From Iphione sp. A-MEVVRFRX5 (taxonomy: Eukaryota), in assembly GCA_976226885.1 (NCBI GenBank), contig OZ320319.1:22816001-22880000 (forward strand): a DNA stretch of 64,000 bases, written 5' to 3'. Position numbers and translations under genes: made by a program. Shown here in pieces: positions 6,201 to 15,200 of this stretch (the first letter of the stretch is position 1; each line of letters begins with the position of its first letter). The notes under the pieces are model-generated. The model saw nothing but the letters and a program-made list of their open reading frames with translations. It had not been told where the DNA came from and searched no databases.

Positions 6201-9200
6201 TTTACTATTTTTACGTACAGTGTACATGAATGTCACAACTTGTTAACAGCCATTGCTTCTATAAATGTTATAACAAGTTATTATTCAAATCAGGTTAGCT
6301 TTTAATATCTGATGAGATAAATATGCTGCATCTTAATAAGTGGCAGTTTCAGAGCGTAAAACAAATAAGAGAAACCTCCGAACCCATGAAAGATTTTCTG
6401 ATACAACCTTAACTATTAAATTCATTGAAAAACAATACAACTGAAAACAAAATGTGCTAGGCAATTTAGTTCAGGCGGTATTCGCGCAGATGCTTTCATG
6501 TAAAGCAACTAGAGTCAAATGGCAACGTTTTTAAATGTTACAAAACCGAAGTTACGTCAGAATACCGAACAAAAAAATAAGTTATTATCCAGTGAGTCCG
6601 CATTATTTTAGACCTCACCTCGTCGTCGCCTTTGCCGGACTGAAAATATCATTGCTACAATCAGCTAATACCGCTTGAGATGTGTAAAAAGTATTCATGA
6701 ATCTATAGCTTATCTAAACAAACTCATAAACCAACAACATTCTTCCTATCCGTATTGAAAGCATTTCCATTACGGAAGGAAGTTAAGTGAAAGATATGGG
6801 AGAATTGGGGAAGTATGAAAGTAATAATAAGGCAACCCTGACAGCACTTATAGACTACTATTACGTTAAATGTCACTCCACACAATGCATTCTAGAAAAA
6901 GAATTATAAATGGAAGCTGTTGTATTTGAGACGATACGGACAAGAGGAGCTCAAACGGAGGTAGTTGGAGGAACAAACATCCGCCACGGTTTTTACACCG
7001 TAAGTCGAAAAGCGTTTTTAAAAAAAGATGAGAGGGCAGGTCCATTCAAATTTATCCCTTTTAGCCAGGAGGAGTCCTTCAAAAACGAAAGCAAAATGAC
7101 CATCCAAAAACCAAAAAAGAGTAGTAATTGATGGTAGTATTCAAAATTCGGAATCCCGTCTCCAGAAGGGTTTTTTTCACCACCAGAGTTAACCACTGTT
7201 GGTCTACCGGCACGACACCTAGTGGCACGGTGTCCTCCCGAGTTGCAGTGGAAACCACTACCAACCTCGCTCTTCTCGTCACTGCTCTTGTCTTTGAACG
7301 GGTGCACCTTGGGCACTTTGAGCGAAGGGAAGACAGACTTCCCTTTCTGGTTCGAGGGGGTGTTGGAAGACATTCGTGTTAGTTTGGATACAGCAGTCTC
7401 AGTAAGTGATACTAATTGGTCAGTCTGTATCAGCAAGGAGAGAAACACAACAGCAGCAGTTTGTATGCATTCTCGCAACACATTCGTGAGCAGGCAATTC
7501 CCGTCTGTAGAAGCTTTCCTACATACTGCATTGAGTCAGTGTTCATAGCACTAAGCTCTGGAGAACGCTACCTGATGCTAGAACAACACTATGCACGTGT
7601 CACACATTCAATGATTATACTACAGAAATACTATCGGTGCATGTCTACATACAGACGAATAATTTTATACATAATTATATGTGCCGTTAGTATCAGTAGC
7701 AGTATTTACAAACAAGTGTAACACAGAGCAAGGCGATATTTACAGATTTAAACACCAGAAGGATATGAACAATGAAGGAATACATTTGCTTCACTAAGTT
7801 CAGTGAACTGTTACAGTGGTTAACCAAACTAGCTGGACATTTGGGGTTAATAGGTTGTGATCTAAACAATGCAGCAAAATCATTTTCAACCTGGTCTTAA
7901 GCCTTGTGATCTATGCAAACAGTTTTGGGGATACATACTGTCCATGGAGACGAATGCATAATTTTAAAAAACTGTCAAAAATGGAAGTCTATTATTAATG
8001 GTTCAACATGCAGTCCATTCCGCATACACTGCACAACTGAGTGTACACTGATCACAGGCCTAGCAATGCTGCATTAGTGGGGTGCACTGAAAAAAGAAAA
8101 TTGTCCTGGCATTGTCTCTATTAACAAGTTTTGCTTTGTCCTAATGATGGTCATACAATGTACAAAATTGGTATCATCACTCAATCTTTCAACAAGAAGA
8201 TTGATAAAAAAACTGGATGTTATCACTGTTGTAGAATTGTCATAATAGACAACTAAACTAGTCATATAGCTGTATGTGGTGACAAATTTTGCATTGACTG
8301 TCACACAATGAAAGTTTAGCATTGTCACTTTTGACTGAGAAATTGTCATAAACTTGTCACAGCAATTACTTTATTCTTGTCACAGTCAAAATACTCGTCA
8401 CAGAATTTTCTCTAGTGACAAGGTGTCATACCATGTTGGGCACATATGATGTACAAGTTTAGCATTGTCAAGCAAATTTTCACATTAAATTATTGTCATA
8501 TAGCTGTCAATTATTTCAACCCTATCCAACCCAACCCCGTACAACTTGATCCTACTAATTCTTAATCCTACCAAAGCCAACCCTATCTGACCCAACACTA
8601 CCCAACCCAACCCTACCCATCCCAGTCTTACTCAATCTAACTTTACCAAACCCAATGACATCCTAGCTCAACCCTACCCAACCCTATCCAATCCTACCCT
8701 ACCTAACCAACCCAACCTAACCTGATCAAAGCCAAACCTTTCAACAAATTAAAGGTTTTAGATCATGCAGGAGGAAATTCTATGTTTTAGTGGTTTAGAA
8801 GCTCTTAGCTTCATTTTGATATAAAGCACTTGCTGCTAGGACCATTCTAAATGTATGTAATGAGTCAATATGCTTACTCACCTCACAGAAGTCAATCCAA
8901 AGTTCATCCAGGTAACACTGGCATTGAATTTGAATGGTAAGTTTCTATTTCCTTTACTGTTCTCTAAAACACCTTTATACAGACTTAATGAAGACTATTA
9001 ATAACACTGTACATTTTACAGTTGTATATCTATTGATTTAACTCCAATGATATGGGTAATAATTATGCCATTGTCCCCTTAAAATAATTGCTGTAGTGAG
9101 ACCTAAGTTCTGATTTGCTTGTGTGTGACATGTTTATGACAAAATATTAGTGTCAACCTGACTTCATCATTCTCATTACTACCTTACATTGTCAAAGACT

Positions 9201-12200: not shown

Positions 12201-15200
12201 ACAGTGTGGTAAATCAAATGTTGACTAGGTTCGAGTTTGAAATAAGTCTAACAGAAAATATTTGTGTGAGTGAATAAGGAATTACAGGCATGTTTAGAGC
12301 AGTGGTCATGTATTTTTAAGACACCTTCGACGACAAATTTACATTTTTTCATGACTTCTATGATTTCAGCTCTTGAATAAATGAGACTAAATATTATGTT
12401 GTAAGTGGTTTCTATTTACTTTCTCTCATGAATGATAAGTTTCCATATTCTAAGGACCGAATCATGTCCAGTATTGATTGACTGAGGTATCACATGTCCG
12501 AAGAACGATTATCTATCACTGCAAATTAGGTCCCTGATTTACTTTCTTACACCTCCTTTCTAACGATGTTTCAGAAACACAAGCTCCCTAGCTTGCACAA
12601 CAATACATTACCTTCTCGAATGGGATTAGGAAAATTGTGTCTGTATTAGAATTAATCTAGCACGTTCCGGAAGTCTCAAGTCCTGTTTGTAGTTGAATTT
12701 TGTATGAACCGAAGTTTCTGTCTGCAGAGATAGTTTCTTGTTATCTCAGAAACGACATTTAAAGCTTACTTTCACACTTCCCTTATCTCTACTGTACAAT
12801 ATCAACTTACATTATGCTTATGTGGGTTCACACCTGCATAAGTTTGAAACACTGGTATTTTTTGGGAGTTTTATAGGGCAGGATGAGCATATTTCTAGCA
12901 TGTTTTTATGACACTGGGAATTGAACGTTGATCTCCAAGTGTGGATGCAAATTAAAAAAATAAAGCGCATGGCAAAAGGAGGCAAGTGGGGCAGGTCGAG
13001 GTCAATATATAGATTAGTTTTATTATGCAAGCCACCGGTCGGTGTTCAGACCTGAGACATGAGGTTTCCTTCTACATACATGTACTGATCGGTCTTTCGA
13101 TTATCAGGTTTTGGAGGGGGAAATTTCATGATTTTTTATTTGCGCCCGATAAAGAACATGCTAACCTTGGCTCATCACTTAATATAACACTGATGTTATA
13201 GTCCAAAGCTAGCTTTACGATGAGTACTTCAGAATCACCACTGCTCCTTGAATTAAAACATAAATAGCTATCTACTTAGCATTTAGCAGGTTTAGCTGTA
13301 AGCCTGGGCTTGCTAGGCAAAAGATCATTTTGGAGATGTTATTTGAGGGGTTTGGTTCTTCGGGCTTTGATATACTGTCGCTTATTATGAAGCAGAAATG
13401 CAGAAAGTCCCCCTAACACCAGACCAATATGTCCTACCTTCTTTTTCTTCTACACGCGAAAGTTAAGTACACACAGGGCGATGACAAAGACAAATATGTG
13501 ATGTTATTAAAGGTTGCACGTTAGTATTGCTGCGGAACAAAGAATTATGATACTGCATGATACTTTCTCATTGATCCGGCCCAGGTTCTCGCTCCGTTAT
13601 GAAAAACTGCTAAAAATCAGCCGGATAACTGAGTCACTTCACTATAAAAACATGCCTGGAATAGCCTGGAATGTCGAACTGGTGGAGTGACGGGTTTAGT
13701 GATGACCGGATTAACGAGATATGCTCCCCTAGCTGACAAAATCATGAACTAATTCTCTCACCTATACAATGGGATAAACACAGCATCCCAAAACAGCCAG
13801 TTTGAAGTTAAGAACAGATACTCTCTGTGGTGTTCTGTCAGGATATTTGTAATATGCTAAACTGTGTTAAGAACTTCTATGAAAAAATATGCCAAACATA
13901 ACAATGATTTGCATTATAAATGCTCTATATGTTCATGGTGTAATTTCTTACTGGGACTGAACACATTTAAGGTAAATATGAAATATATTTGATCCATTCC
14001 ATTCCATAAATATTCCATAAATAATTTTGAATGACCTAGAGTACAAGAATGCCTCTCTGGATTCATCATACATAATTAAGATGGCATGTATTTCACCTTT
14101 TCACCTAACATTATTAAAATCATCTCATTCTGGCCAGACTGGCTGGCTTCTTATGTCTAGACAGAACCTCCAGGCTTTGTCCGATGACGAACCTACAAGA
14201 TTAGGTCCGTTACTGATCAGTGAGGACTGTGCACAGCAGATCAGTCTGTTCGTACCCTCAAAACATGGCAGTGCTTGTTACCAGTTAAAAACTATGCACC
14301 ATGAGGCGAATATGAGTAAGCAAAATGAATCCTGGGAATGAAAGCATTCTAGCAGGCTGGACACACACATGACTTCACTTGCTCGCGTTTAATAAATCAA
14401 AAATAAATTGAAGGAAATAAATTTCTGATGCAGATATATACACTGGCTATCAGTACGTATATGGGCATCAATTTGTGTAGCTGCTAGAACTTTATTGCTG
14501 CTAAACTATGGCCTTGCTTTTTATCATTTCAACCGCGTTTCGAAACAAATCATTGCCATCCCTACTGTAGACCTTTACAGTGGCAGCTGTGTATAATCTA
14601 ATGAGGCCTCTCGGTGCGGTGCCTGCTAAAAGTGCATTTTATCCCCATAAACATAAACAACTTCTCTCTTTAAATACTCCTTCTTGATGTAATATTAAAC
14701 AACACCTGTTATTGTGGTGGCTTATCAGGGGATACTGTGACGTTTCAAGTTTCGATTTCTGTAACAATATTTACCATTGGCTCCTTCTCGGAGGGCATGT
14801 CGATCACGTGTTCCCCTGGCGGCAATTGTTGTCCATTAACAGCGGCAGCACCTGGAGACGTGTGTGAAATTTTCGTATTAGAATGCATTTCAGCGTCAGG
14901 AATAAATAATATTCTCATGTACAATATAACTTTTTTGAAACTTTGAACTACGTATATTCATCGCAGTAATAAAGAATGTGCAACATGTGAATATTTGAAC
15001 TCATCATTTGCTGGCCTCCAAGCTTGAGAGTCATAGAAGATTGGTTAGAGGCAGCAGACATGTGAGCGTATAAAATTGTCACTAAGGGTACTGCAGTCTA
15101 CAGTGGCGCCACCTGGATTATATCTTATAGTGTCCACCTCAAGTACTAAAGTTGTGAGGTATGCATAGTATATTCAATGTGATNNNNNNNNNNNNNNNNN

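Follow-up and report, generated by a model that had tools for sequence, protein, structure and literature searches.

Candidate small phase-0 exons in the linker intron of an Iphione ferlin gene, at the position of dysferlin exon 40a

Here we describe a ferlin gene on the minus strand of a 64,000-nucleotide (nt) stretch of the genome of Iphione sp. A-MEVVRFRX5 (NCBI GenBank assembly GCA_976226885.1, contig OZ320319.1, positions 22,816,001 to 22,880,000; the window), and in particular the 8.9-kilobase (kb) interval ahead of its exon with the IDWWSK motif, where dysferlin carries its alternative exon 40a. An initial annotation of the window had proposed that this interval harbors seven cassette exons and microexons. 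On balance, we favor the view that the interval between 14775 and 5910 is not one empty intron, and that its sequence holds genuine small coding exons of the ferlin.

By its sequence the gene is a ferlin, as the initial annotation had it: Pfam C2 matches fall on exons 23273-23587 and 55398-55760, and about 21 tblastn exon matches to long ferlin proteins run colinearly from about 55.6 kb down to position 2. The gene leaves the window inside its last C2 domain (exon 256-2); Ferlin_C was found downstream in orthologous loci, and the C-terminal transmembrane anchor of the window gene would lie beyond the window end. The conserved segment ...IDWWSK(Y/F)(Y/F)AS... between the third-last and second-last C2 domains is present in exon 5910-5800, which is 70-94% identical to its counterpart in many invertebrate loci, the closest relative by this exon being P0001 (94%). 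As a query, the 38-residue translation of 5797-5910 returned mostly fragments, together with long ferlins about 50-57% identical, and a 60-residue open frame over the same exon returned only genomic open-reading-frame fragments of other species. A run of 132 N at 15190-15321 directly follows the readable coding sequence of the exon that precedes the linker (C2E region) and leaves the 3' end of that exon undefined.

Exon 5910-5800 aligns to residues 1471-1502 of human dysferlin and 1498-1529 of myoferlin. In the structure of dysferlin solved by cryo-electron microscopy, the 21-residue exon 40a is inserted between Q1470 and E1471, at the protein surface (Huang et al. 2024, PMC11544258). The acceptor at 5910 aligns to E1471, the first residue after this published boundary, so the placement of the interval at the exon 40a site in the initial annotation was correct. 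Its statement that calpain cuts there likewise agrees with the literature: Redpath et al. (2014) reported that calpain cleaves within exon 40a, freeing two C2 domains with the transmembrane anchor, and that myoferlin and otoferlin undergo similar cleavage (PMC4230592). The exon encodes 21 residues with ...LAPTNTA-SPPSSPH... (PMC4230592, PMC11544258); it is reported to be conserved in most mammals (Ballouhey et al. 2021, PMC8650162), with only moderate preservation reported among vertebrates (PMC4230592).

The seven segments, here called c1 to c7 in transcript order, were each located on the minus strand within intron 5911-14774 (Table 1). As described in the initial annotation, each is preceded by AG and followed by GT, contains no stop codon, has a length divisible by 3 and stands in phase 0. 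Sighting seven such segments is by itself uninformative, because the intron contains about 530 of them: depending on edge handling there are 6,602-6,687 AG..GT pairs 9-212 nt apart, and stop-free, frame-preserving segments number 527-528 at 9-210 nt and 540 at up to 297 nt. The real exons of this gene score modestly with generic splice matrices (8.4 at most for acceptors, some of which fall below 0, and about 0 to 8.7 for donors), and splice signals alone therefore separate poorly. With both sites at >=0 bits, 12 of 72 pairs on the gene strand preserve the frame versus 5 of 66 antisense, a mild excess only, and at >=2 bits for both sites the generic matrices leave no frame-preserving pair in the intron.

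Table 1. Features of the linker interval, with the results of the splice-plus-codon scan, and the matching exon region of related loci. LLR, log-likelihood ratio; a slash marks a splice site.
Feature	Position	Strand	Length (nt)	Description	Combined score	Codon-LLR tail
Upstream anchor exon	14775..14852	-	78	ends ...EKEPM in phase 0; donor ATG/gtaaat
Linker intron or intron series	5911..14774	-	8,864	phase 0 at both borders; GTAAAT start, TAG end
c1	13449-13438	-	12	KKKK	8.6	0.018
c2	10756-10694	-	63	21-residue S/T/G/P-rich peptide	12.8 (longer variant 14.0)	0/2,045
c3	10103-10086	-	18	SAVTLV	14.0	0.05
c4	9940-9914	-	27	AT-rich, DLYINIFIP	0.7 (rank 55/540)	0.50
c5	8917-8882	-	36	12-residue hydrophobic, cysteine-rich peptide	8.3	0.04
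c6	7424-7266	-	159	53 codons	21.2 (rank 1/540)	0/224
c7	6639-6619	-	21	SGKGDDE	11.9	0.0002
Downstream anchor exon (IDWWSK)	5800..5910	-	111	acceptor tgtag/AAACCTGAT
Exons A-C region, L001	8076-9438
Exons A-C region, L004	6757-9065
Exons A-C region, L005	1603-3066

A combined score, the sum of acceptor, donor and in-frame codon LLR, was computed for all 540 frame-preserving segments of the intron. The codon LLR was trained on 1,295 in-frame codons of homology-supported exons versus intron trinucleotides, and its tail is given as the fraction of equal-length stop-free intron windows. The six top distinct loci of the intron are c6, c3, c2, c7, c1 and c5, and no comparably scoring segment had therefore been overlooked in the initial annotation. 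Among the negative controls, seven antisense stretches (about 39 kb) gave maxima of 7.6, 2.6, 6.5, 10.2, 6.2, 3.2 and 7.8, with a single locus at 8.3 or above, and exon-free introns on the gene strand peaked at about 4.5-8.7. Two exons left out of training served as positive controls: 28794-28651 scored 35.5 and 54736-54686 scored 14.4. They match residues 575-618 and 204-220, respectively, of the ferlin P0152 and are colinear with their neighboring exons, and tblastn with distant ferlins had missed both. Four of the seven proposed exons (c6, c3, c2 and c7) exceed every negative control, lying near or inside the range of the held-out exons, and to that extent the proposal stood; c1 and c5 belong to the upper tail of the null, like the best chance hits, and c4 is background.

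The segments differ in what else speaks for them. We consider c6 almost certainly a coding exon from its sequence: its codon signal is frame-specific (13.1, versus -10.2 and -16.1 in the other frames) and concentrated in 7400-7266, its acceptor at 7424 (6.3) is by far the top site nearby, and 7266 is the top in-phase donor nearby. An alternative in-phase acceptor at 7346 would give an 81-nt form. Segment c3 is probably an exon, and a microexon candidate; its acceptor, ctctttttgttttcctgcag/, scores 10.3, a level shared by only one other of the 3,720 AG sites of the gene strand, the GTAAGT donor lies 18 nt further on, and pairs of a strong acceptor and a consensus donor like this one occur only twice per strand in the whole window. 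A second in-phase acceptor for c3 lies at 10154 (4.9).

Base composition points to some of the same segments. The intron has a GC content of 0.385, 1.7 CpG per 100 nt and a CpG observed/expected ratio of 0.46; the corresponding values for the known exons are 0.53, 5.1 and 0.73. The top CpG/GC peaks of the intron fall on c2, on the 3' half of c6 and on c7. The strongest is that on c2, which has 7 CpG in its 63 nt and which we regard as probably an exon; c7, with 4 CpG in 21 nt and a gtgagg donor scoring 7.0, is also probably an exon and, like c3, a microexon candidate. For c1 we are undecided between exon and chance: its acceptor scores 1.2 and its donor 4.3, and other ferlins carry lysine runs at its point of the linker. 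Chance is more likely than a true exon for c5, which has a good donor (7.7), a poor acceptor (-2.5) and a hydrophobic, cysteine-rich peptide unlike the linkers of other ferlins. Segment c4, which has no CpG and a codon LLR at the null median, is most likely a chance segment. No Rfam family above threshold was found in the GC-rich patches, and no transfer RNA or short interspersed element in the intron.

Comparison with other species was made through 74 loci of other invertebrates, reached from fragmentary open reading frames containing the IDWWSK exon. These loci are about 70-80% identical to the window in exons, and their introns do not align with it. In L001/L002, L004 and L005/L006, three conserved exons, A, B and C, occupy the matching intron, between the ...GDTVIDMP.DQQEKKSL exon and the ...EEDIDWWSK exon. 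Block A reads IGQYSDLLDQNVSAL..., block B L(S/T)RG..KLKNIKKKLGKLKK... and block C ...KGKFKLGLKLPQLNLGFKKGEEEDEE. Each is in phase 0 and flanked by AG..GT, with lengths of 78/72/66, 78/81/75 and 96/111/90 nt; the lengths vary between species only by multiples of 3, a clear coding-exon signature. Between L001 and L004, exon A is about 90% identical in DNA over its first 48 nt.

Exons A to C resemble the candidates in being small, in phase 0, divisible by 3 and placed in the matching intron. They are rich in lysine and acidic residues, and the end of exon C resembles the 3' half of c6. In composition-preserving shuffles this half gave p = 0.0002-0.008 against the joined exons A+B+C and p = 0.0004-0.014 against exon C alone, and the open frame containing c6 ranked first among 4,293 six-frame segments of the window when compared with the three exon C peptides. 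The donors are also alike, gttggtag in c6 and gtttgtag or gttcgtat in exon C (gttNgt in common). The arrangement differs, in that the A-C loci have three separate exons of 66-111 nt whereas the window would have one 159-nt exon together with microexon candidates. Cross-species short-peptide and tblastx searches for c1 to c5 and c7 gave nothing convincing in the 74 loci.

A second instance of an exon at this position comes from an oyster. In the Saccostrea cucullata myoferlin-like model P0156 (L008) the upstream exon ends GEHVIEMPTEEKKKE, strikingly like that of the window, and the 5.2-kb matching intron contains one annotated 63-nt phase-0 exon, TGKAILVKARSKLDSALQRIK, before ...PDPVVEEEIDWWSK. 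None of the seven segments is detectably similar to that exon, and the model is fragmentary, on a contig of 7 kb. The homologous upstream exon ends at the same point in the oyster locus (GEHVIEMPTEEKKKE/gtaac) and in L012 (...DMPSDEKTPI/gtaagt). L012 (1123-1197, 6076-6177) is a second ferlin locus in the metagenome of L005, which therefore contains either a pair of ferlin paralogues or two host species. The upstream exon of L012, GAAAQSPLPPEQVVVDMPSDEKTPI, looks more like that of the window than the L005 type does. At L034:545-643, in a ferlin locus that also comes from a metagenome, ...EHIVDMPPEGEKQK and part of the downstream exon are contiguous, with no intron and no insert, forming a natural minimal linker, and a direct junction from 14775 to 5910 is for this reason plausible.

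Some apparent resemblances were rejected. At 13275-13129, a weak match of LDYNISVI to exon A lacks a phase-0 splice context and would yield a segment of 40 nt, a KLNLGSK spot in the oyster intron has no exon signals, and a likeness of the start of c6 to exon A or the oyster exon, seen by eye, was unsupported (ranks 267 and 561). With the rotifer fragment P0134 as query, a region search found five matches, none of them close.

The open frame around c6 is itself of note, in that a 180-codon stop-free frame on the minus strand (7535-6996) contains it. Over about 7000-7545 stop codons are absent from four of the six frames, and the patch stands out in this intron for its high GC content; as a protein query the 180-codon frame gave zero matches. 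Read-through of the 7266 donor would lead into a T-rich stretch with a hydrophobic peptide, probably translated pyrimidine-rich intron. Between c5 and c6 lies one degenerate tandem repeat (8567-8723), whose unit of 15 nt is CCTACCCAACCCAAC when read on the plus strand and GGGTT/GGGTA-rich on the gene strand; no repeats common to the linker intron and the rest of the window were found. The scan also marked exon-like segments elsewhere on the minus strand, at 34414-34539, 33989-34102 and 33508-33597, which tblastn with distant ferlins had likewise missed, and the segment 34539-34414 encodes what we take to be a ferlin-typical motif. A further exon-like segment, 60171-60347 (minus strand), precedes the C2A exon, codes for a long acidic stretch with ten lysines after it and weakly matches residues 98-139 of P0152, and a 9-nt segment at 37392-37400 (minus strand), scanned in phase 0, stands out with a score of 11.4.

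How far this evidence goes depends on the alternatives. The strongest form of the proposal, that all seven segments are cassette exons or microexons which combinatorially tune calpain cleavage, trafficking and lipid binding, we regard as highly improbable, even though the site is homologous to that of exon 40a, every segment is in phase 0 and divisible by 3, and six of the seven are the six top loci of the intron. The background score of c4 and the position of c1 and c5 within the control maxima argue against it, as do the peptides of c4 and c5, which are hydrophobic and rich in cysteine and tryptophan, unlike other ferlin linkers. Its appeal also owes something to c2, whose 21 residues and abundance of S/T/P match the published exon 40a; the likeness is one of length and composition only, and PDB searches with c2 and c6, which left the exon 40a peptide out of the comparison, retrieved no ferlin chain at E values as high as 10. 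A different reading takes the CpG-rich 7424-6450 for an internal promoter or alternative first exon, instead of or besides cassettes, from which a short transcript for a C2F-C2G-transmembrane mini-ferlin would start. About 1 kb immediately ahead of the exons for the two-C2 module is enriched in CpG, there is an in-frame ATG within c6 (...LTRMSSN...), and the 180-codon frame spans it; we nevertheless judge this very unlikely, since the strong acceptor of c6 fits an internal exon and the homologous exon C is elsewhere an internal phase-0 exon.

The interval might also contain no exons at all, the AG..GT pairs being due to chance and the signals to noncoding GC- and CpG-rich patches such as regulatory or unmethylated DNA. 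Such a reading, which we consider unlikely, has to contend with the strong frame specificity and best-local borders of c6, with four loci that beat every negative control in a scan that also recovers held-out real exons, with relatives that have conserved coding exons in the matching intron, and with the 3' half of c6 being the top match to exon C in the window. It gains from the roughly 530 frame-preserving segments that arise by chance, from the lack of any such pair with both generic scores at >=2 bits, from protein searches that gave no match to the segments, and from two further points that, with those that follow, weigh against coding exons in the interval. The CpG-rich patches reach somewhat past the borders of c2, c6 and c7, and the codon LLR of c2 (11.6) is positive in all three frames, so that part of its signal is plain GC-richness. 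Both splice sites of c2 are weak, as is the acceptor of c7 (-3.1). The scoring is rough, with a codon model built from 1,295 codons only and splice matrices that were generic rather than trained on the species. The likeness of c6 to exon C is modest (tblastn E = 0.32 within the intron), MAFFT sets the donor slightly differently, hidden Markov models built from three sequences, too small to inform, left c6 unranked, and no convincing counterpart of exon A, exon B or the oyster exon was found in the window. The A-C loci may be either orthologues or paralogues of the window gene, and protein searches returned no spliced protein of the species or of a close relative.

We return to the reading in which the interval does hold small coding exons, and consider what they might do. 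As small symmetric exons, the segments c6, c3, c2 and c7 would build a loop that, placed by alignment at the exon 40a position, has the C2E region on one side and the C2F-C2G-transmembrane module on the other. Every candidate starts and ends in phase 0, so any subset of them, or none, could be included or skipped with the frame kept; borders of this kind permit alternative splicing. The translated peptides carry many charged and S/T/P/K residues, a composition also seen in the linkers of other ferlins, and suggest that the exons would extend a surface loop or tether of this character. Such a loop may act through the length of the tether, through basic patches for acidic lipids, or as a carrier of phosphorylation or protease-sensitive sites. 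A calpain site, and the tuning of trafficking and lipid binding at the linker, can be suggested here by analogy only.

The closest published system is dysferlin exon 40a, with which the candidates share the intron position, the nature of a short frame-keeping insert and a location ahead of the C2F-C2G-transmembrane module. In dysferlin there is a single alternative exon, whose use and cleavage have been shown experimentally, whereas the window has several candidates known from sequence alone. A further parallel is offered by the neural microexons of bilaterians (SRRM4/eMIC), whose length is a multiple of 3 and at most 27 nt and whose 3' splice site has a pyrimidine tract and a UGC nearby. This layout is fitted by c3, which has a long run of pyrimidines, a TGC right ahead of the AG (ctctttttgttttccTGCag/) and the GTAAGT donor; c1, c4 and c7 agree with it in length and frame only, and all four would sit in the surface loop. 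No literature linking ferlins and microexons was found.

One could go further and suppose that the intron of exon 40a is an ancient bilaterian hot spot where symmetric exons in phase 0 arise, merge and disappear, that four to six of them are spliced combinatorially in this gene, so that the tether varies in length, charge and sensitivity to proteases and the C2F-C2G-transmembrane module is released or retained accordingly, and that regulated ferlin cleavage, known only from mammalian cells, is ancestral and controlled by splicing. We offer this as speculation that is probably wrong in its full extent. The outcome is more probably for the most part a correction of gene structure, in which the 8.9-kb intron gains one or more small coding exons missing from the annotation, probably about four. 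It is also a modest comparative point on ferlins, and not yet a new mechanism. If the exons are real, this gene and the three-exon array of the related loci would show that animal ferlins generally take up frame-neutral exons at the exon 40a site of dysferlin, which would then be no mammalian peculiarity, and the gene would provide a tractable invertebrate setting for asking whether splicing at this loop governs the release of the two-C2 membrane-fusion module.

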